The position numbers and the translations under genes are program-made. From positions 98,636 through 162,635 of the forward strand of contig CDMY01000221.1 of assembly GCA_001179505.1 (NCBI GenBank): a stretch of DNA of 64,000 nucleotides, given 5' to 3'. Below are positions 292 through 56,356 of the stretch, in pieces. This DNA is from Vitrella brassicaformis CCMP3155 (Eukaryota > Protista > Chromerida). The first letter of the stretch is position 1. Each line of letters starts with the position of its first letter. The notes beneath the pieces are model-generated. The model was not told where the DNA came from. It did not search any database and worked only from the letters and a program-made list of their open reading frames with translations.

Positions 292-2309
292 ATGGCCCGC
301 ATCCATCCACACGCCCTCCTCCTCTCAACGCTGGCGCTCTTGCCGATATGGGCCGGCGGCGAGGGGGGTTTCATGGCTCAGGAGGACAAGAAGTCCCGGA
401 AGCTGGTCGGCAAGTGGGGTGATTTCGAAGAGGGTGACCTGACGGGCGACGACATCCCCCGCTTCAACCCCGACGTGTTCCCCTTCCCCACCAAGGCCCC
501 GCTGCCTGACAAGCTGACCAAGGATGATATCGAGAAGAGCATCGACATGAAGATCCCCGACTCATGGAAGAAAGACGAGGACGGCTACGTCGCGATCAAG
601 GACCCCGAGTACTGGGAGCAGTACAAGGTCACCAAGCCGCCCATCCCAACCATACCTGAGGACAAGCCCGAGCCGCCCGACCTCAGCAAGCCGACCCAGG
701 GGCCCAAGAAGGAGAAGACAGTCAAGGTGCCCCAGTTCTTGTACGAGATGGGGCTCTTCACCCCCTATGAGGAATTGGGACCAGAGGACAAGGATAAGAT
801 TGAGGTCGTCCCGGATCCTGAGATCGACAAAGAAGAACTCCAAGAAAAGTTCGACCTCGCTAAGGAAATTGCCAGGGCCGTCGCCGCAAATGCACGTACG
901 ACCAGATGCACGCAGGCACAGCAAGAGAGACACACCAAGAGACGAGAAGAATCTCGGAATCGTGATTTCTTTCGCATGCAGGGGGTGAAGATGCTGAGGT
1001 GCCAGAGTTCGTTGAGGACCAGGAGGGGCCGCTGCCCAACACGGATGAACTCTTGGACTCAATCCCGACCAAAAGCCTCACCGAATTAGGGCAAGAAATT
1101 GGCCTTCCCCTTCGGGAAAAGTACAAGTCGTCCAAAATTGGGCAAACCCAAAGGAAAATCGGCGACATTGTCAACTACGCTGAGGTATGATTTGTCAGAG
1201 AGACATGACAACAGTTATGGCTCCACTGGTCCTGTGCGCCCACCCCACCCCACGCACAGGAGCTGCTGACCTATTGGCTAACTCCCGAGATGATTGATTT
1301 CCTGGAGTGTGACGCGCTGGTGAGCAGCGTGGAGAACTTCCTCCTGGACAACATTTCGCCCTTCATCTCCATCGAAGAGGACGACCCCGTATGGCAGTAT
1401 GTGCGGGGCCTGACGGAGGCGATTCTGTGGTCCAAGCTGGACATCATCGATCCACCCGAGAGCGAGCAGGAGAAGTACCAGGAGTATCGAGACGCATACT
1501 CCGACGCAATCGTCTGCGAATTGATCAACAACAACTCGCCCAACTGCCCTGTGGAGTTCCCACCTAAAGACGAGGATGATGATGACGACGATGATGACGA
1601 GGACCGGCGTAGGCTCACAGCTCGGGCAGCTCATTCCTGTCAGCCGCCAGGGGTCACCCCGAAGGGCTTTCCAGGTCTTGCAGGCGGACACACGTACATG
1701 GCCGCGTGTCTCACCGGCTCTTCTTTTTTGCAGAGTGTGTGTACGTGAGCGGCTTTGCGGCTTCCTGCAGCCCCCACAACCTCCTGGGGGGGCGTGGCTG
1801 TGCTGCGGGCAGGAACATTATGGCGCAGGAGCTTGACGGCCTGTATCGATATGACACGACGGACGTCTCCGGCTGGCCCGTCTATTCAAAGACTGTCCAC
1901 AACATCCCAGGGGCCGACAAGGTGTTCCTCAACAAGCCCCACGGCACGAGCGGCGCCTACGCAGCTTTTGCCTGCCTCCAAGCGGATTCAGAGGTGAGCG
2001 AGACACGACAAGAGACGCATTGCACCAGCTGGTCTGTCTCATTTCCATGCACTCACTTGTGTCATGTCTTGCCTGCAGGCGCCGCGGCGCAAGTTGGAAA
2101 AGAGCCCCTTTGCCTTTACCTATCAGTCTGGGGCATGCAGCAGCCTGGACCCGAGGACCTTCCCTGCATGCCTCTCATCGGCAGGGCCATGGGCGCTGGC
2201 CAGGCTGGGGACCAAGGGGTGCAATGGAGCCGTATCTGAACGGTCGTCTGTCTGCTGGTTCCCCGCCAGAGTCAAGATATTTCCTTGCGCATGTGGCTCA
2301 TTCGCTTAG
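292..2309 (+). CDS. Secreted acidic protein with Cys-rich C-terminal region, unknown family (5 exons: ~292-895, 982-1184, 1260-1674, 1733-1992, 2079-2309)
   Basis: Signal-peptide-like N-terminus MARIHPHALLLSTLALLPIWAGG. GT-AG splicing joins the listed ORFs (184, 999, 1290, 1706, 2064) in frame. The C-terminal half aligns by eye with the gene at 3591-6540. Confidence 0.75.
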
Positions 2310-2894
2310 AGAGACAGACTGTGGGCAATGCGTCTGTTGGCGTTGGGTGTTTGGCACCGTCCTGGGTTTGGTCAGTTGGTCGGTCGGTCGGTCGGTCGCT
2401 GCATGTCGTGTTTACGTCTGCTTATGGATTTATTTCGGCGTGCGTGTGGATGGTGTGATGTGGTCGGATTTTGGTGCTACGCCTGCTGCCCATGAAATGA
2501 ACGAGTGAATGAGAGGCAAGGGAGCATTACATCCATCCATCCCTCCACCCAGCCACGATGCGGTGCAGTGTCCACTCAAGGCACAGAGTCTGGCAGACAG
2601 ACACCACACCCAGCAGCCAGCTACTTACCGTCTACCTACCTACCTAGTCTCGTCAGCACCCTCCCTCCCGTCTTGTCTTGTCTGAGGTTACGTGTGTGTG
2701 TAGAGCATGCAATGGCAGGCACGTCACCCGGTAGGTCAGTCAGTAAGCTCATGCCATGCAGCAGGTGGGGACTGGCGACTCATCCCATCTATCTGTGTCC
2801 GTCCGTCTGTCCGTCCGTCTGTCGATCTGCCATCCACCGTCCGACAACCACCACCACAATCCACAATACGATAACACCACCCACGAGAGCACTA

Positions 2895-3260
2895 GACGTA
2901 CGCACACAGGCGGACTGACTGACTGACAGACTGACTGACAGACGGATGGGATGGTTAAGTCCAAACGAACCTGCCGACGACTGACTGCACGCAACGACAA
3001 GGGGGAGAGGGAGAGGGGGAGAGAGAGAGAGAGGGAGAGGCATATGCTACGAGAAGGGAGGGGAGGGGAGAGGGGAGGGAGGAGGGATTGACGGCAAAAT
3101 AGTCACCACGAGTACACACGTACAGACATACAAGGAGAGAGAGGGGGATGCGAACACGCATACACACACACAACACGCAGCAGCATAATAGATATCGGTA
3201 GGTCATTCAGTCGATGAGCGAGCGAGACAGTCAGTCAGTGAGTGATCCAATCCAAAAAGG
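2895..3260. repeat. Microsatellite-rich intergenic tract (GACT/GACA, GA-rich, CA, CAGT); representative of tracts in most introns of the window
   Basis: Directly visible simple repeats. Confidence 0.9.
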
Positions 3261-3590
3261 AACGGAAGAAAGAACGAGGCACGCTGCCCCCCCGAGCCCT
3301 ATCTGCCTAGCCAACCGGCCTGCCTACCTGCCTGCCTGCCTGCCCAGCCGCTCCCTCATGCGTGCGCGCCAGCAGCGCTCTATCTACCGACCAACTTTGG
3401 ATCTGACGGCATGCATCCACATGAGCGAGCGGCAAGCTGGCGACAAGTCGATAATCATAATCATAATGATAAGTTGTGTGTACTGCCGGCCAGCCAACCG
3501 CACCACAGCCCACCCCAGACATACGCACACTGATTCAATATGTATGCACATCTACTACACAGGCCACGCCGCCCCAGCCCGCCCGCTGAT

Positions 3591-47087: not shown

Positions 47088-47387
47088 NNNNNNNNNNNNN
47101 NNNNNNNNNNNNNNNNNNNNNNNNNNNNNNNNNNNNNNNNNNNNNNNNNNNNNNNNNNNNNNNNNNNNNNNNNNNNNNNNNNNNNNNNNNNNNNNNNNNN
47201 NNNNNNNNNNNNNNNNNNNNNNNNNNNNNNNNNNNNNNNNNNNNNNNNNNNNNNNNNNNNNNNNNNNNNNNNNNNNNNNNNNNNNNNNNNNNNNNNNNNN
47301 NNNNNNNNNNNNNNNNNNNNNNNNNNNNNNNNNNNNNNNNNNNNNNNNNNNNNNNNNNNNNNNNNNNNNNNNNNNNNNNNNNNNNNN
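47088..47387. other. Assembly gap (300 N), intergenic
   Basis: Run of N. Confidence 1.
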
Positions 47388-47619
47388 CGACTGATCGCAT
47401 AGCAATCCGTGTGTGTGTGTGTACAGATTTCCTGCTGCCTGGTCCCCCCACTGGACCGACCTGTGGGCGTGGCGTGCGTCCTGCCAATGTAAGTGTATAT
47501 ACATACCCTCCTTGAAGCCTATATACTCATATCTGCATACATACATACATCCGTCATGCCTTCATGAGGCGCCTGGCTATGCTGCGTCGTTCATGCCTCC
47601 TGAGTGAGTGATTGTGACT

Positions 47620-48717: not shown

Positions 48718-50885
48718 TCACGAAGTGTTCATCTGCTGTGGCATCGTTTTGTCGAGTTTGTCCATGGCCTCTTCCACCGTGGCGTACGCGTCCTTCTTGG
48801 GCTGGAAGAACCTGCGCCTGTTCCTGGGCTCCTGCAGCCACGCCAGAAACAAACGGCACCTGCACACACACACACAGGGCACACAGAGAGCACTTAGAGA
48901 TGCACTCACTCAGAGATACGGAATGGGTGTCCATAAATGTTCGACGTGTCTGTCTGTCTGTGTATGTCTGACCGGTCCATGACGTTGGCCATGGCTCCCT
49001 CTTCTAGCACAGCCCTGGGTGCGGCCGCGAGCATCTTAGGCAGGCGCACGAAGAGCCGCAGCAGGTAGATGCCGCCCGCCACCTCACTGGGCTTGGGGAA
49101 GTCCTCACGCACACTGCCGCTCCCCGCACGCTGCGGAGACACCGGCGACTCGCCCCCCTCACTCTGGCCGTGGGCACCGCTGATAGAGGATGGACAAACA
49201 GACAGACAGACAGTAAAGGCATGACCAGACATGCCACCAGGGCCGCGTGCGGTAGTATCGAGCCGGCTCACGTGTCCTGGTTGGCCAGGTAGTTGTCTCT
49301 GATGCGGGTGAAGACGGCTTTGACGTAGGCCATCTCGTCCTCGGTCACCAGGTGCGACTCGAAGTAGGTGTCGAAGTACCACTCAACCGCAGCAGCAAAA
49401 TCAACCAACACAGTCTGGCTGGCCTCCGTCTTGGGCATGCTCAGCTGACTCCCGCCACCTGCTGGCGACGCTGCTGCAGCGGCGGCCGCGGCGGCAGGCG
49501 CAGGCGCAGCTGCTGCTACATAGACGACACAAGCAGCAAAGAAGGAAGCCAAATGGATGGATGGATGGATGAGTGGTATTGTGTTTTGGTGTTCTACATA
49601 CCCTGTGTGTCGGATGCCGCTGCAGCAGCTGCTGCGGGCGCCTCGAGTCGCTGCCGCTTGTTGGGCTCGAACTCCGAATCTCCATCCAGATGACGCTCCA
49701 GGATGCCTGACACACATCACAAGACAACACAACACAACACCAGAAAACAAGCTCACACCTCCCGCTGCCCGACCGCCCCCCTTCGGTCATTTGCTCACTC
49801 ACTTGTGTCGACCTTCCTGTCCCAGATGGGGTGCCCCTGCTGTCGCCCCTTGGTGTGGCGCACCGACCGCCGCTCCCGCTCGACATCCATGCGCGACTCG
49901 CCGTCGGCACTGTCGTCGTCGTCGCTGGTGCCCCGTGCCTTGTCGTGCTGCTGCTTCTGGAAGTCGAGGATGATGTCGTAGACGGAGATGGGTGCGGGGA
50001 GGAGTGGCACCTTGCCGTCCTGCACCATCTCCCAGTCCTGGTTGATCCTCTTCTTGAGGTCCTCGGGGATGGCCATCCTGTCCCACAGGTGCTTGTAGTG
50101 CTTCTGGTTCGTGTCGGCCGATGATGTGTCGACGGGCAGGACGCGACGCTGGCTCTTGTAGGCCTCCATCTGGCTCTGGCACTGCTTGCACTTCCACACG
50201 AACTCGTCGCTCAGCGGGTCGATCGACTCGCGACGCTCGCCCACCACAATGCACTTCGCCAGATCAGCCTCCAGACACTTCTGGTGACACCAACTGCAAC
50301 ACACACACACACACACACACACACATCCAGTCCTGTGCACGTGCCTGTGGTGTGTGTGTGTGTGTCACCGCTCGCAGAAGTTGCACCCGACCCAGGGATT
50401 GCCGTCCTCGTCCGGATACTCCTCAAACACAATCTGGTAGCAAAACGGACTGCACACAACAGCGCACGCGAGACGCACCAAGAGACCACGGATGCCGAGA
50501 CGATAACGGAGTGACAGACTGCTCTGCTGACCCACCAGTATCGCTTCTCTTTGTAGGATTTGTAGCATTGGCTGCAGTAGACGTTCTTGCTGTCCTTGCG
50601 GCCGCCGGGCGGCAGGTGCCGACGGTCAACGAACCCTCCAACATTCTGCAGGCGTGACACCACATATCCACCGTGCGATTGCGGTTGAGTGACTCAATTG
50701 GAGTGACTGCTCATTTGTTTGGCACGTGCCTCACTGACCTTGAGGTTGAGTAGGGTGGGCTCATTCTCGCCGGGCGGATGGTCCTCGTCTGCGTTGCAAA
50801 GGATGTTGGAGCACTTGGTTCCCTGATGCCCCTTCATCCACCGCACTAGAGTCGGGTCGACCTCCTGCTGCTCCTCCATGCTCAT
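48718..50885 (-). CDS. Zinc-finger/PHD plus MRG-domain protein (EAF3/MRG15-like, no chromodomain seen)
   Basis: MRG motifs IPEDLKKRINQDWEMV...LPAPISVYDII, YFDTYF..HL and PSEVAGGIYLLRLFVRLPKML. PHD CYQIV...WVGCNFCERWCHQKC...WKCKQC. Additional upstream Cys pairs. Confidence 0.8.
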
Positions 50886-51024: not shown

Positions 51025-51081
51025 TGAAGCCAGAAGGCAAACTGTATGAGTAGAGGAGTTAGACACAAGGAAGGAGTAAGT

Positions 51082-54000
51082 ATGAGTGAGCATCGCAAGA
51101 GGAAGAGCAACGCTGCGAGAGGTAGGCACGAACATTGCACGAACGCAGGACAGGTGACCCTCGCCATCGTGGCACTCGCTCATTCATTTCGGTGCTTTGC
51201 TTTGATTGATGTCACTCACAGAGCGAGGAATCGAGCTGCTGGAGTTCCTCCCATCTATCGGCGTCAAGGCGCCGCAGGTGCCTGTCGAGCCGCAGTGGCG
51301 CATCTTGTTTGACGTGTCGATGGACGCCTTCTACGCCAGGCTGCTGGTCAACGGACAGGAGCATCTGTTCGGCCCGTACCAGTCGCTCCATGAGGCACGG
51401 CAGCGCCATGACCTGGAGGCAGTCAGATACCTGGGTCTGCGGCAGGGGTCGAGGATAGCATTCGACGGCCACCTCATGCAGCCGCATCGGCTCGACCCTG
51501 CCCTGCGCCAGCTCTACTACTTGGGCCACCCTGAGGAGGGGGACAAGACGCCCACAGCCAAACGGAAGCAGGCATCGCGAGAGCAGGCGCCAATGGGGAG
51601 CAGCAGCGCATCCTCAGCAACGGCATCAGCACCATCACCGGCAGCGGCGGCAGCAGCACCAGTGGCGGCAGATGTGTGCGAGGATCTCAACGATGAAACG
51701 ATGGAGGAGACCGAGGAGAAGGACTTTGACGTCATCGTGATTGGAGCGGGCACTTCAGGTGGGCAGCAAACACGACACAGCTATACAAGGAACAAAACAA
51801 TCATGCCACCTGTGCCTGTGTGTGTGTGTGTGTGTGTGTGGTCGTTGGTTCTGTCCTCAGGTTTAGTTGCCGCTCGTGAGTGTGTAGCCGCGGGCCTCAC
51901 TGTCGGCATATTCGAGTCACGCAATGAGCCAGGCGGCAGATTGCGGACGCACACTCTCCGTCACACCTCCTCGTCGTCGGCCGCTGCGTCATCGGCCCAG
52001 CCGCCCCACTCTGGCGACGTCCATGTGGAGCTCGGGGCCCAGTACATCCACGGGTGCGCCGGGGAGCAGCAGCACAAGGGCAACCCCGTCCTACGCGCCA
52101 GCATCACACAGGAGCGACGAGTGGGCTATGTGGCCGGCCCAGAGGGCACCTCAGAGCCATGCGACACGGCCATGTTCTTCGACACGAAGAGCGGCCATCC
52201 CGTGGCGTCGTATGACGTGGCGAGGGTCGACATGGTCATGAAGGCCATGACCGAGGAGGTGCGGTATGAGGTGCGGCTGGCGTGCAACCCTTGTGCGGCC
52301 CACCCCTACTGGCAGGCGACGCCCGTGTCCCACCTGCGGACCATCCACGACCTGGCCCTGCACGCCAAGGCCGCCGGCGCCAAGAGGAGGGGCGACATCA
52401 GCAACCGATGGCGCGACCACCAGCTGTGGCTGGAGCATGAGGCAACCATCGAGAGCTACCTCGACACCATCTTCCCCGACCGACACGAAATCCTGTCGCC
52501 ATCCACCCAGCCCCCTTCGCCCACCTTCAGCCCAGCCAGGACGGGCGACTCAGCGTCATCCAAGTCCAAGAAGAAAGACGGGGAGAGCGAGGCTGCCGAG
52601 ACCCAGGAGGGCGTGTGGCCCCCTCCGGTCAAGTCAGATCGCATCAGGCGGAGCGTGCGTGTGCGGCGGGGGACTGAGGGGTCAGAGGATGGGAGGGGGG
52701 GCGGAAGCAAGCATGTGGAGGATCTCGAGTCGGCGTCGCGTCGGCTGCTACCCAAGGTACTCGAGCGCCACCTGATCGTCCTCTATGTGCGATTGCATGT
52801 ATGTGTGTATGGCCGATTGCCTGCAGGTCCTCAAGCGCCTGGGGCTGCAGGGCCACTGGACCGACCTCCACGACCAGATGCTCGCCAAAGCCAAAGCGCG
52901 GACGTAGGAGGGGGAGCCGAGGAGGCACGAAACCATCAGATACATTACATCAGACATTTTCTTTCTCTCTCTCTCTCTGTGTGTGTGTGTGAATGTGTGT
53001 GTCTGTATCAGTTGGATGATGTGTTGCTCTCCGTGTGACTTGGATCTGCAGTACGAGCACTACTTGGACACCATCAAGTGGAGCGACCAGGACGGCTGGC
53101 AGTGGGAGGAGCACATGTCGCCCAAAGACGACGACGCCTTCCGCCACGAGTACCTCGACATGAGCCGTGGCGAGGGCGACACCTGGCTGCACGACGCCCG
53201 CCTGGCCCCATCCATCGACGACCTCCTCTCTGCACACGACAAGCGCCTCGTCAGCACCGGCCGCAAGGACTTCGAGAGCAAGAGGGCCGCCGATCAGCAC
53301 CGCAGAGTGGCTAAGCCCACTCCCGTCAACCTCACCAAGGCCGACTGGATCGTGCTCGAGGGATACCGCCAGATGGTCATCGACCCACTCATCCAGCACC
53401 ACTGCACCACCGCCACGGTGCCGGACGGCCGCGAGGTGGACGGACAGCTGGCCGTCGTCCACTATCGGTGTCCGGTGGCGAGCATAGAGCATCGCACCGA
53501 CTGTCGGCTGGTGAGGGCGGATGGCGTTGCTGAGGGAGCCGAGGGCTTCATGGAGGTGCGGCTGGCCGAGGGCGCCGATGCCGCTCGCAAGGTGGGCAAA
53601 GGACAATGACGGGTGCGCATGGGTCGGTGGGCTGACGACTCTTCGTTCTGTGTGTCTGCAGGTGTATCGCAGTCTGTACGTGGTCGCGACCTTACCCTTG
53701 GGCATCCTCAAAGCGTCCCTTAGCTGCCACCGCGACCAGGCCAAGATAGACGCATCCGACACACTCAAGAAGAAGTGAACCACAACACAATCACGAACAC
53801 AAAGCCCCAAACAGCCTCTTCATCGTCGCTGCTCTGTCGTCTTCCTCTTCGTCTTTGCCGTCAGTTTGGTGACGTTCGTCCCGCCCCTCTCATCGGCCAA
53901 GCAAGAGGTGATCACGACCCTGGGGTTCGGCATCCACAACAAAGTGCTGCTGCGGTTCGACACGCACATCGGCAAGGGGTCGCTGCGGCCGCCCAAGCCA

Positions 54001-55132
54001 TCCGGCACCAGGTCGGGTGATGCACAGGGGCAGGGTGAGGGTGCGGGCGACACGGCTCTGCACCCGCTGTGGTCGGAGTTCGGTGGTGTGCCCAACTGGA
54101 CCAACACCCAACCCGACTACCCGGTGCAGATACTCAACCTTCACGCATACGGTACGGTAGGCACACACACAACACCACATAGACAGACGACAGAGGTGAT
54201 TGCGTGTGTGGCGTGTGCCTGTCTGTGTGTCGATCCGTTCAGGCAAGCCGGGGACGCTGTGCATGCACGTGTATCCCCCGCTGTCTGACGGCTTCAACGG
54301 CAAAGACGACCAACAGGTACGTGTGTGGCGTCGACAAATACAAAGGGATAGGGAGCGACCAGTCGACCATTCCATGTGTGTGTGTTGGTGGTGTGCGCGT
54401 GTGTGTCCGCAGGCGCTAGAGGAGTGTCTGGGCGTGCTCGAGAACATGTTCAGAGGACCCCTTAAACCGCGACTGGTGGGCGACTGAACCGACACGTGTA
54501 TGCATACCAACGACAAGACACCCTTCCATCCACCTTGACTTGTGCGTGGCGTGCATTAGTGTGAGGGTGCGCCTGTGCTGCCCACTCTCCTGGACTGGAA
54601 GATCACCCACTGGGAGAGGGAGCCCGAGGCGCTCGGATCCTACTCATACCTAGCAAAGGTCAACACCACACACACCACACCTAATTGCTCTCCTGCATGC
54701 TGTGCTTTGCCTTTTCTCTCATCTCTCTGTTTGCAGGGCTGCGGTGAGGAGGCCGTGACCGAGTTGGGACAGCCCGAACACTCGGGGAGGCTGCAGTTCG
54801 CAGGTAGGCCACCTCACCCACCCCCTCCCTCTATCTGCTGTCATATGCGTCCCTGTCGTCGTGTGTCAGGTGAGGCCACCTCTCGTGAGGGCTTCCAGTG
54901 TGTCACGGGTGCGTGGATGAGCGGCGAGCGGGCGGCCAAGCACATCAGGAACCACATCCGGGACACCAACCCCAACCACCCCATGGTGTCTACATCGGCT
55001 GCAGGCGGCACGGGGTCGGCCTCTATGGTGGCTGGGGGCGAGCAGCAGCGCGCGCGGCGGCCGTCGCTGAAGCGCAAGGAGAACGAGGAGCTGCTGGCCG
55101 ATATCAAGGACAAGAAACTCAGGTTTGAGTGA
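51082..55132 (+). CDS. Flavin-dependent amine oxidase (LSD1/polyamine-oxidase type) with N-terminal AP2/ERF-like domain
   Basis: VIVIGAGTSGLVAA, ESRNEPGGRLRT, VELGAQYIHG, VATLPLGILK, LGFGIHNKVLLRF, WEREPEALGSYSY, LQFAGEAT...VTGAWMSGERAA. First exon MSEHRKRK (NLS-like) splices in frame at 51222. No SWIRM domain seen. Confidence 0.85.
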
Positions 55133-55351
55133 GTGATGAGTAGTGTAGGTCTTCGTCGTCTTGCTCTGGGATGGGATGGGGTGGGATGGGTGTATCGTGC
55201 GAGGATGACACTCCCGCCATGCAATGACTTTTTGCATGACGCGTTGCACGTATGAATGAATGGCCATTCATTTGATCAAGCGAAGGAACACTGGTCCAAT
55301 GAAACATCACACACGCACATAGATACCCACACGCACATCTGCCTGCACTCA

Positions 55352-56356
55352 TCAGCCGGTCACCTTGACATGTGGGGGCACACAGGTCAGAATGGAGCAG
55401 TCAGGCGGAATGAAAGTGAAGTCCTCATTGCGTAATACCCCCACCTGTGGCCGCGTGCACCCAAAGAAGCAGCTGTACGTCCCCTTGCCGGCTGCCGAAT
55501 CGAGAAAGGCAGGCACAGTCTGGGGGCTCGATAGGTCGGCCTCCACCATCAGCACCGGCAGGTGCCGTGCAGTGGTCTGCATGGCCCCCTGCAGCACCTG
55601 CATCCCCATCCTCTCCACGTCAATCTTGATGACATCAAGCCGGGGCCACTCCATGTCATCCAGACGAACCCGCCACACTGCCTCTGTGGCCTTCCCAGCC
55701 GTTCCAATCCAATCTGACGGACGGTCCGTGTCGACCGTGGACGCACCGAAATTGCCAATATGGTCGTAGTCGTATGTCGGTATGGTCATCAGCTCCTTCG
55801 CGTTGCCCACCGCAGCATTGACCGTCCGCACCACTGACCCAAGGCCGTTCAGCACCACGTTGGCAGCGAGCACCTGGAAGATCCGTCTAAATGGCTCGAA
55901 CGCCACCACACGCCCGTGGGGCGCCACTCTGCGTGCCATCGGGACGGTGAGTGAGCCGATGTTGGCGCCCACGTCGGCCACCCAGCAGCCGGGCTGGAGA
56001 AGCTTCTCCACACTCATGAGTAAGGTTTCCTCCCACACGCCGTGGACAATGAGGGATGCGCTGACGAAGAAGTCCAGCGGGAAGACCACAAAGCTGCCGT
56101 GTTTGCCCCGTGTCAACAGGTAGGAGGCGGCATCGTGCTTGAAGGCGAAGCCGTTTTGGTTCTCGTCATGGGTGGATTCATTGAAGAGGCGCTGTGGATC
56201 TAGCTGCTGGCCGATGCGATGATGGAGATGGCCATCCGCCAGGCTGCACTCGAGTGCGCCGTCGGTGCTGCATTGGCCCGCAGTGGTCGAGTTGACAGCC
56301 GATGATTCCGCACCAGCGTAGAAGAGGGAGAGGAAGAGAAGCGAAATCAACAACAT
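55352..56356 (-). CDS. FkbM-family SAM-dependent methyltransferase, intronless, with N-terminal signal/anchor
   Basis: VADVGANIGS, AFEPFRRIFQVLAANV, VNAAVG, LDVIKIDVE, PVLMVE; N-terminus MLLISLLFLSLFYAG. Confidence 0.9.
   Translation of the reverse strand: MLLISLLFLSLFYAGAESSAVNSTTAGQCSTDGALECSLADGHLHHRIGQQLDPQRLFNESTHDENQNGFAFKHDAASYLLTRGKHGSFVVFPLDFFVSASLIVHGVWEETLLMSVEKLLQPGCWVADVGANIGSLTVPMARRVAPHGRVVAFEPFRRIFQVLAANVVLNGLGSVVRTVNAAVGNAKELMTIPTYDYDHIGNFGASTVDTDRPSDWIGTAGKATEAVWRVRLDDMEWPRLDVIKIDVERMGMQVLQGAMQTTARHLPVLMVEADLSSPQTVPAFLDSAAGKGTYSCFFGCTRPQVGVLRNEDFTFIPPDCSILTCVPPHVKVTG

Follow-up and report, generated by a model that had tools for sequence, protein, structure and literature searches.

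A divergent AP2-type domain probably joined to a PAO/LSD1-clade amine oxidase in a six-gene family of Vitrella brassicaformis

Does a flavin amine oxidase of Vitrella brassicaformis carry its own DNA-recognition module of the AP2 kind, and what would such an enzyme do? The question is raised by a gene at positions 51082-55132, plus strand, of the stretch of DNA analysed here ("the window", 64,000 nucleotides of contig CDMY01000221.1, positions 98,636 to 162,635, from strain CCMP3155; positions below are those of the window). Vitrella is an alga and a free-living relative of the malaria parasites, and in apicomplexan parasites and their algal relatives transcription is regulated predominantly by AP2 proteins. 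A preliminary description, made from the letters alone, had read the gene as an AP2/ERF-like domain fused to an amine oxidase of the LSD1/polyamine oxidase (PAO) type, possibly a histone demethylase with its own targeting domain. We find that an AP2-type domain and a PAO/LSD1-clade oxidase without a SWIRM domain stand, while an LSD1-like histone demethylase is not established, the relevant motifs being common to polyamine oxidases and SWIRM being absent. A nuclear location and sequence-specific targeting to DNA are likewise hypotheses. The architecture as described, with a conserved fusion of the two parts, is highly probable. Both parts are of known kinds.

The gene reads as 12 exons encoding 1031 amino acids with no internal stop (sequence reading and a scripted frame check), and the AP2-fold domain and the GxGxxG motif for flavin adenine dinucleotide (FAD) lie together in one uninterrupted exon, exon 2. 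We searched the genome (72,700,666 bases in 1064 contigs, the scope of all genome searches reported here) first with the domain itself, later with its profile, and found six loci: the window gene, on C221, and those on C275, C562, C793, C274 and C13. All six have matches to PF01593, the Pfam amine oxidase model, shortly downstream on the same strand, and a single open frame holds both GxGxxG and the domain (or its helix half) in C562, C275 and C793. With the exons of the window gene as queries, the oxidases of the six loci were found to be one another's closest relatives; these exons also matched pieces on C262 and C772, and no further oxidase was detected in the genome by this search. Since all six copies are fused and their oxidases are mutually closest, the family appears to go back to one fused gene that was later duplicated. 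In four paralogues the domain is 46-58% identical to that of the window gene, and in C275 and C13 29-33%, compared with about 25% for the oxidase as a whole. The domain is thus the best-conserved segment, which suggests, as far as sequence comparison can, that it is under constraint.

The paralogues show some peculiarities of their own. Upstream of its AP2-fold domain, C275 has an extra open frame (G000:C275:182000-188000, 413-625, plus strand; SGVRLNGQ...YRYQGYVKVGGR...) on which Pfam is silent, and whose language-model features point to AP2 clusters (0.92, 173 shared features, a borderline recognition), so this paralogue may carry two AP2-type modules. C562 has a 446-aa open frame upstream of the domain (G000:C562:185174-188386, 1820-3160, minus strand) with no Pfam match at E<=0.1, in which further sheet-helix-like stretches can be made out by eye (e.g. 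GVWYQEKGGKLVLSV...). Where the window gene reads GIHNKVLLRF, C562 reads ...GSHTRVVMRF (G000:C562:181500-187500, minus strand, ~3194-3316), and it contains a long poly-Gln/His insert. Matches to the Pfam AP2 model, PF00847, are found near or above threshold at 150 or more places in the genome, often in tandem, with clusters on contigs such as C290, C269, C488, C781 and C708, which makes for a very large complement of AP2 domains. With a hidden Markov model (HMM) built from 24 canonical AP2 domains, no match at E<=0.01 came up within the window or beside 20 other PF01593 loci (taken as 10-kb pieces, mostly covering one flank). The oxidase gene on C321 is an ordinary PAO-like gene without AP2.

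To what family does the N-terminal domain belong? The stretch at ~51290-51465, previously noted for its AP2 pattern, is present at 51293-51463 and is conserved in the six paralogues. A phmmer search of residues 15-121 against 1.84 billion representative sequences gave a single protein at E<=1e-3 (3.7e-4, over four stretches). This protein, P0001, is a tandem-AP2 protein of the diatom type, with six Pfam AP2 domains (5.7e-37). When a profile of the N-terminal domains of the six Vitrella paralogues (A1) was compared with the PDB at E<=10, four sequences were returned, the top three of them AP2: WRI1 (0.0033) and AtERF1 twice (0.35 and 0.42). The WRI1 and AtERF1 alignments share one register, through the NG turn, the G-aromatic end of strand 3 and the EA...D.EA...G helix. 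Aligned by hhalign to the six AP2 repeats of P0001, A1 reached 74% probability (E 2.9e-5, 36 columns). The three-stranded sheet plus helix that the preliminary description proposed to look for is predicted with high confidence by AlphaFold2 on A1 (strands 8-14, 19-26 and 29-36, helix 39-54, in the numbering of window:51272-51520; predicted local distance difference test score 81-91 by block, 86-91 in the core), with the chain predicted to be disordered past residue 59. An exhaustive structure search (VIA) ranks the AtERF1 GCC-box binding domain (2gcc) first at Z 5.1, with WRI1, TEM1 and PfSIP2 at Z 4.4-4.7; the best structural matches also include 7wq5, 7et4 (root-mean-square deviation, rmsd, 1.7-2.8 Å) and 6sy0. 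Among the 100 nearest named clusters by ESM Atlas features, AP2 appears in 64 + 35 (top score 0.93), and the top cluster shares 179 of 256 features, the tool's mark for true family members being 170. By shape, the domain has HNH+AP2 endonucleases and a viral AP2 cluster among its neighbours (template-modelling score 0.52/0.60, rmsd 2.1 Å). These signals of homology are weak one by one and concordant in register, and taken together they make it very probable that the domain is a member, if a very divergent one, of the AP2 superfamily.

The remainder of the protein is readily recognizable as a flavin amine oxidase. PF01593 matches three exons, namely exon 3 (profile positions 4-50), exon 7 and exon 12 (Table 1), and the motifs kept are GxGxxG as VIGAGTSG (residue 186), ESRNEPGGR, VELGAQYIHG, ATLPLGILK, GFGIHNKV (residue 768, with Lys774), GSYSY (residue 915) and FAGEAT (residue 943). 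The GFGIHNKV motif, at 53923-53946, had been likened to GFGNLNKV of LSD1, and HMMER alignment of exon 7 to LSD1 residues 637-668 indeed places Lys774 on K661. The large insertions that had been noted are real. PF01593 positions 50-263 (213 positions) are covered by about 485 residues, leaving about 270 extra residues within the span of the model; this insertion begins about 140 residues past GxGxxG, is spread over three exons and has no Pfam or PDB match. A second insert of about 50 residues, common to the paralogues, follows the Lys motif. The absence of SWIRM was borne out by a Pfam search of the gene, which gave no PF04433 match, the stretch from the AP2 fold to GxGxxG being of low complexity; the sole SWIRM match in the whole genome is at C395:31378-31506, and no PF01593 match was found on contig C395. 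Searches of exon 3 and of exon 5 against the PDB by phmmer gave no match. On its sequence the oxidase falls within the flavin amine oxidases of the PAO/LSD1 clade, and the PDB entry that scores best, with it the apparent subtype, changes from one piece of the oxidase to the next.

The reading that we favour, with a probability of roughly 0.6, is that of a 1031-residue flavoenzyme in which a highly divergent AP2 domain is joined to a PAO/LSD1-clade oxidase with large lineage-specific insertions, in a family of six Vitrella genes. A linker of about 90 residues, predicted to be disordered, separates the two parts. The oxidase would attack the C-N bond of a secondary or tertiary amine, either methyl-lysine or a chromatin-bound polyamine, to give H2O2 and an aldehyde, and the AP2-fold domain would tie the oxidase to DNA or chromatin. 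The enzyme would then bring its own targeting module, in replacement of the SWIRM/CoREST-type targeting of LSD1. That the substrate is histone methyl-lysine, and not a polyamine, seems doubtful to us.

The same protein might instead be a polyamine oxidase, acting on spermine or spermidine or in the back-conversion of acetyl-polyamines, with the AP2-fold module serving localisation, regulation or partner binding and with no role in histone demethylation, a possibility that we consider unlikely but that several of the alignments favour. The Lys motif of exon 7 aligns as well to the NNK motif of mouse PAOX (residues 292-321), where it has its best PDB score (18.2 bits, vs 15.1 for LSD1), so the placement of Lys774 on K661, a feature common to PAOX, is not diagnostic for LSD1. 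An N-terminal oxidase profile of five paralogues, scored against the PDB, favours putrescine oxidase (27.1 bits) and SMOX (21.9 bits) over LSD2 (18.7), maize PAO (18.1) and LSD1 (17.7), and the lack of SWIRM fits a polyamine oxidase as well. These score gaps amount to only a few bits, however, and for exon 10 the PDB search lists LSD1 alone, at a non-significant 12 bits. Known polyamine oxidases such as PAOX, SMOX, plant PAO and yeast Fms1 have the same oxidase fold and motifs, with SMOX aligning across GGR and ELGA..IHG, but they consist of the oxidase only, at about 450-560 residues (typically some 500), and their peroxisomal forms end in peroxisomal targeting signal 1 (PTS1). The Vitrella protein is twice as long, with about 270 inserted residues and an N-terminal AP2-fold domain and linker, and its C-terminus, ...LRFE, is not a PTS1-like end. 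A fold of the DNA-binding type is also better explained by a function in chromatin, although polyamines too are chromatin-bound.

Several observations weigh against the favoured reading of a chromatin-directed AP2-oxidase. The check with PF00847 suggested in the preliminary description was negative: there is no match even at E<=10 for the domain of the window gene or for those of C562 and C275, with a model that, as a control, detects P0001 at 5.7e-37 and at least 150 places in the Vitrella genome. When A1 is aligned by hhalign to a mixed set in which Vitrella ApiAP2-type domains predominate, the match is weak (55% over 21 columns); set against the 74% for P0001, this places the domain nearer to the plant, diatom and viral type of AP2 than to the local ApiAP2 type. 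The structural Z-scores of about 5 are no higher than those of unrelated small sheet-helix folds such as double-stranded RNA-binding domains (dsRBDs) and PH domains, and the structure by itself is therefore consistent with AP2 without singling it out. Word-index protein searches with a 609-aa read-through frame, with its FAD region and with the 582-aa exon of C275 gave no matches, a result that is uninformative on absence and is likely due to low-complexity words and strong divergence. Exons 1 and 2, including the AP2 exon, have no RNA-like contig (see below), just low-complexity cross-matches. The lysine at the catalytic position is kept in the window gene, C275 and C13 and is an arginine in C562; by its sequence the C562 paralogue may be non-catalytic, and not every member of the family need be an enzyme. 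Finally, of about seven base-contact positions of ERF domains, compared by extending the HMMER alignment by eye and with the AtERF1 contact residues known from the literature, only one or two are kept and most Arg or Trp residues are replaced by hydrophobic or acidic ones. The predicted outer face of the sheet has two conserved arginines but also Leu and Tyr, and the net charge of the domain core is +1 to +2, against an average of +4.5 over 24 canonical AP2 domains (20 from Vitrella and four repeats of P0001).

It is this last group of observations that makes the function of the domain uncertain. Nearly all known domains of the AP2 superfamily bind DNA, and we put the chances that this one binds nucleic acid at about even; given the low charge and the replaced contacts, it could bind a protein or the oxidase itself. 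An unlikely extension of this idea is a sheet-helix module at the N-terminus that lost nucleic-acid binding, or never had it, and that plays a regulatory or structural role through protein-protein or intramolecular contacts. Besides the charge and the by-eye comparison of contacts, such a module would fit the restriction of the domain to this oxidase subfamily in the genome (6/6) and the Foldseek search of the PDB, in which there are weak matches only, none at E<=0.001, and dsRBDs are interleaved with the AP2 domain of TEM1 (rmsd 1.7-2.4 Å). Yet every sequence-based and language-model test indicates AP2 specifically, the two arginines, in strands 1 and 2, are conserved across the paralogues, and the diatom-type AP2 repeats of P0001, taken alone, are just as weakly charged (+1 to +3). 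That a separate small AP2 gene and an oxidase gene were wrongly joined by annotation or assembly, or that the gene is a pseudogene, is very improbable: the lack of RNA-like contigs over exons 1 and 2 and a protein absent from, or undetected in, protein libraries would fit such an artefact, but domain and GxGxxG share one uninterrupted exon in the window gene and three paralogues, all 12 exons read through as one open frame with canonical splice sites, and the assembly is matched by DNA contigs from independent runs.

The gene model behind these arguments is given in Table 1. Each of the 11 introns has GT...AG ends and a length of 66-108 nt; the short introns of the region are rich in TG repeats, and the region has about 59-63% G+C. 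We compared the window with contigs from two runs that we presume to be RNA (X1 and X2, called "RNA-like" here on that guess) and from two DNA runs (X3 and X5). The last seven introns are precisely skipped in the X1 and X2 contigs, while X3 and X5, in which the spliced junctions are absent, run collinear with the window, and RNA-like contigs additionally overlap portions of exons 3 and 5. The oxidase gene is intact and at least partly transcribed. As exons 1 and 2 are without RNA-like contigs, it is from sequence logic and from homology to the paralogues that we place the 5' end and the HRKRK start and take the AP2 exon to be transcribed, and the start codon is uncertain, the alternatives being an in-frame ATG at 51046 or an intronless start at the ATG at 51209. 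Accordingly, of the two basic ends that had been compared to nuclear localization signals, the C-terminal LKRK...KDKK lies in an exon found in a spliced RNA-like contig, whereas HRKRK belongs to a 40-nt exon 1 that follows from GT-AG and frame only. A start of exon 5 at 53052 was considered and rejected, since it breaks the frame and the unspliced C275 paralogue shows coding 40 nt earlier, in agreement with 53012.

Table 1. Exons of the oxidase gene and position of the AP2-fold domain in the window
Feature	Position	Strand	Content	Basis
Divergent AP2-fold domain (predicted)	51293..51463	+	Strand 1 51293-51313; strand 2 51326-51349; strand 3 51356-51379; helix 51386-51433	
Exon 1 (putative)	51082..51121	+	13 codons + 1 nt, MSEHRKRK...	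GT at 51122, AG at 51220-51221, frame continuity
Exon 2	51222..51758	+	AP2-fold domain; low-complexity Ser/Ala/acidic linker; GxGxxG (VIGAGTSG, 51737-51758+)	Single open frame
Exon 3	51861..52756	+	Remaining FAD-binding fold (ESRNEPGGR, VELGAQYIHG); first half of large insertion, with low-complexity stretch	PF01593 6.9e-6, PF13450; paralogue alignment A3 and PDB profile matches; RNA-like contig 52365-52602
Exon 4	52827..52903	+	Within insertion	GT-AG; frame closes only with exon 5 start 53012; homology to unspliced C275; junctions without RNA cover
Exon 5	53012..53591	+	Second half of insertion, then oxidase substrate-domain strands	RNA-like contigs 53081-53360, 53480-53589; junction 53591/53662 seen
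Exon 6	53662..53774	+	ATLPLGILK strand	Both junctions in spliced X1, X2 contigs
Exon 7	53865..54151	+	GFGIHNKV (Lys774 codon 53941-53943), then subfamily-specific insert HPLW...NLHAYG	PF01593 positions 263-301; junctions seen
Exon 8	54243..54316	+		Junctions in X1, X2
Exon 9	54413..54475	+		Junctions in X1, X2
Exon 10	54560..54658	+	W...GSYSY motif	Junctions seen; weak alignment to LSD1 738-765
Exon 11	54737..54803	+		Junctions seen
Exon 12	54870..55132	+	FAGEAT...GA..SG FAD-binding end; Ser/Gly/Ala-rich tail with basic cluster LKRK...KDKK; stop 55130-55132	PF01593 positions 418-442; RNA-like contig 54867-55133

The limits given in the preliminary description fit this model, as the oxidase gene fills one intergenic-to-intergenic interval between two minus-strand genes. 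The upstream neighbour, which is divergent (49795-50885), encodes an MRG domain (PF05712, E 7.5e-9) and is a gene of the chromatin type; before the MRG domain there is a PHD-like Cys/His spacing, seen by eye and with no Pfam match. The likely first exon of this gene lies at about 50694-50885 and ends about 200 nt from the putative start of the oxidase gene, and the two genes may share a promoter region. Downstream, and convergent, is a 334-aa frame at 55352-56356 for an FkbM-type methyltransferase (PF05050, E 3.9e-14) with a hydrophobic N-terminus. Upstream of the region there is an assembly gap, a run of about 300 N at about 47090-47390.

How does the protein compare with known systems? With LSD1/KDM1A and LSD2/KDM1B it shares the clade of FAD amine oxidases, the lysine on K661 and motifs of the GSYSY and FAGEAT type, and its similarity to them is limited to such generic motifs. 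The Vitrella protein differs in having no SWIRM and no recognisable Tower, the coiled-coil insertion found in LSD1 only, and its added domain is AP2-type and N-terminal. Its large insertion begins, about 140 residues past GxGxxG, at roughly the site of the Tower in LSD1. With the AP2/ERF and ApiAP2 domains of PF00847 the fusion domain shares the order strand-strand-strand-helix and, in register with WRI1 and AtERF1, the NG turn, the G-aromatic pair and the EA...D.EA helix; it differs in falling below the Pfam threshold, in being weakly basic and in having the ERF base contacts largely replaced, and it is nearer to AP2 domains of the diatom, plant and viral type than to the ApiAP2-type domains, 150 or more, of Vitrella itself. 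Among the JmjC demethylases, KDM5 with its ARID and KDM2 with its CxxC have built-in DNA-binding domains. They embody the same concept, an oxidase that modifies chromatin and brings its own module for DNA recognition, but the catalytic fold, that of an Fe/2-oxoglutarate dioxygenase, and the DNA-binding domains are unrelated. The closest conceptual precedent is found in Schizosaccharomyces pombe, where Lsd1 and Lsd2 are LSD-type oxidases that carry a DNA-binding-type domain of their own, a C-terminal HMG box (PMC7226997).

A full-text search of the literature found no paper that, for chromerids, treats AP2 together with LSD1, a histone demethylase or an amine oxidase, and the chromerid genome paper is silent on both amine oxidases and demethylases (PMC4501334). 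Should the protein prove to be a polyamine oxidase with a decorative domain, the case would be of modest interest. The recruitment of chromatin enzymes by AP2 proteins is nevertheless an active question, and a family of six paralogues in which an AP2-type domain and an oxidase are fused is a natural experiment that links the two. Here a flavin oxidase whose targeting domain is built in could be put to a direct test, and the fusion hints at partnerships that may be sought in the parasites. A larger and quite speculative proposal, which we hold with less confidence than any of the functional alternatives above, is that a family of chromatin amine oxidases that target themselves evolved in Vitrella, and perhaps in the chromerid lineage. 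In them a private and fast-evolving AP2-type domain would read the DNA sequence and guide the enzyme, an LSD1-like demethylase or else a polyamine oxidase of chromatin, to specific loci. If that were true, the master-regulator domain of the apicomplexan lineage and an epigenetic eraser would be combined in one polypeptide, without partners of the SWIRM/CoREST type.

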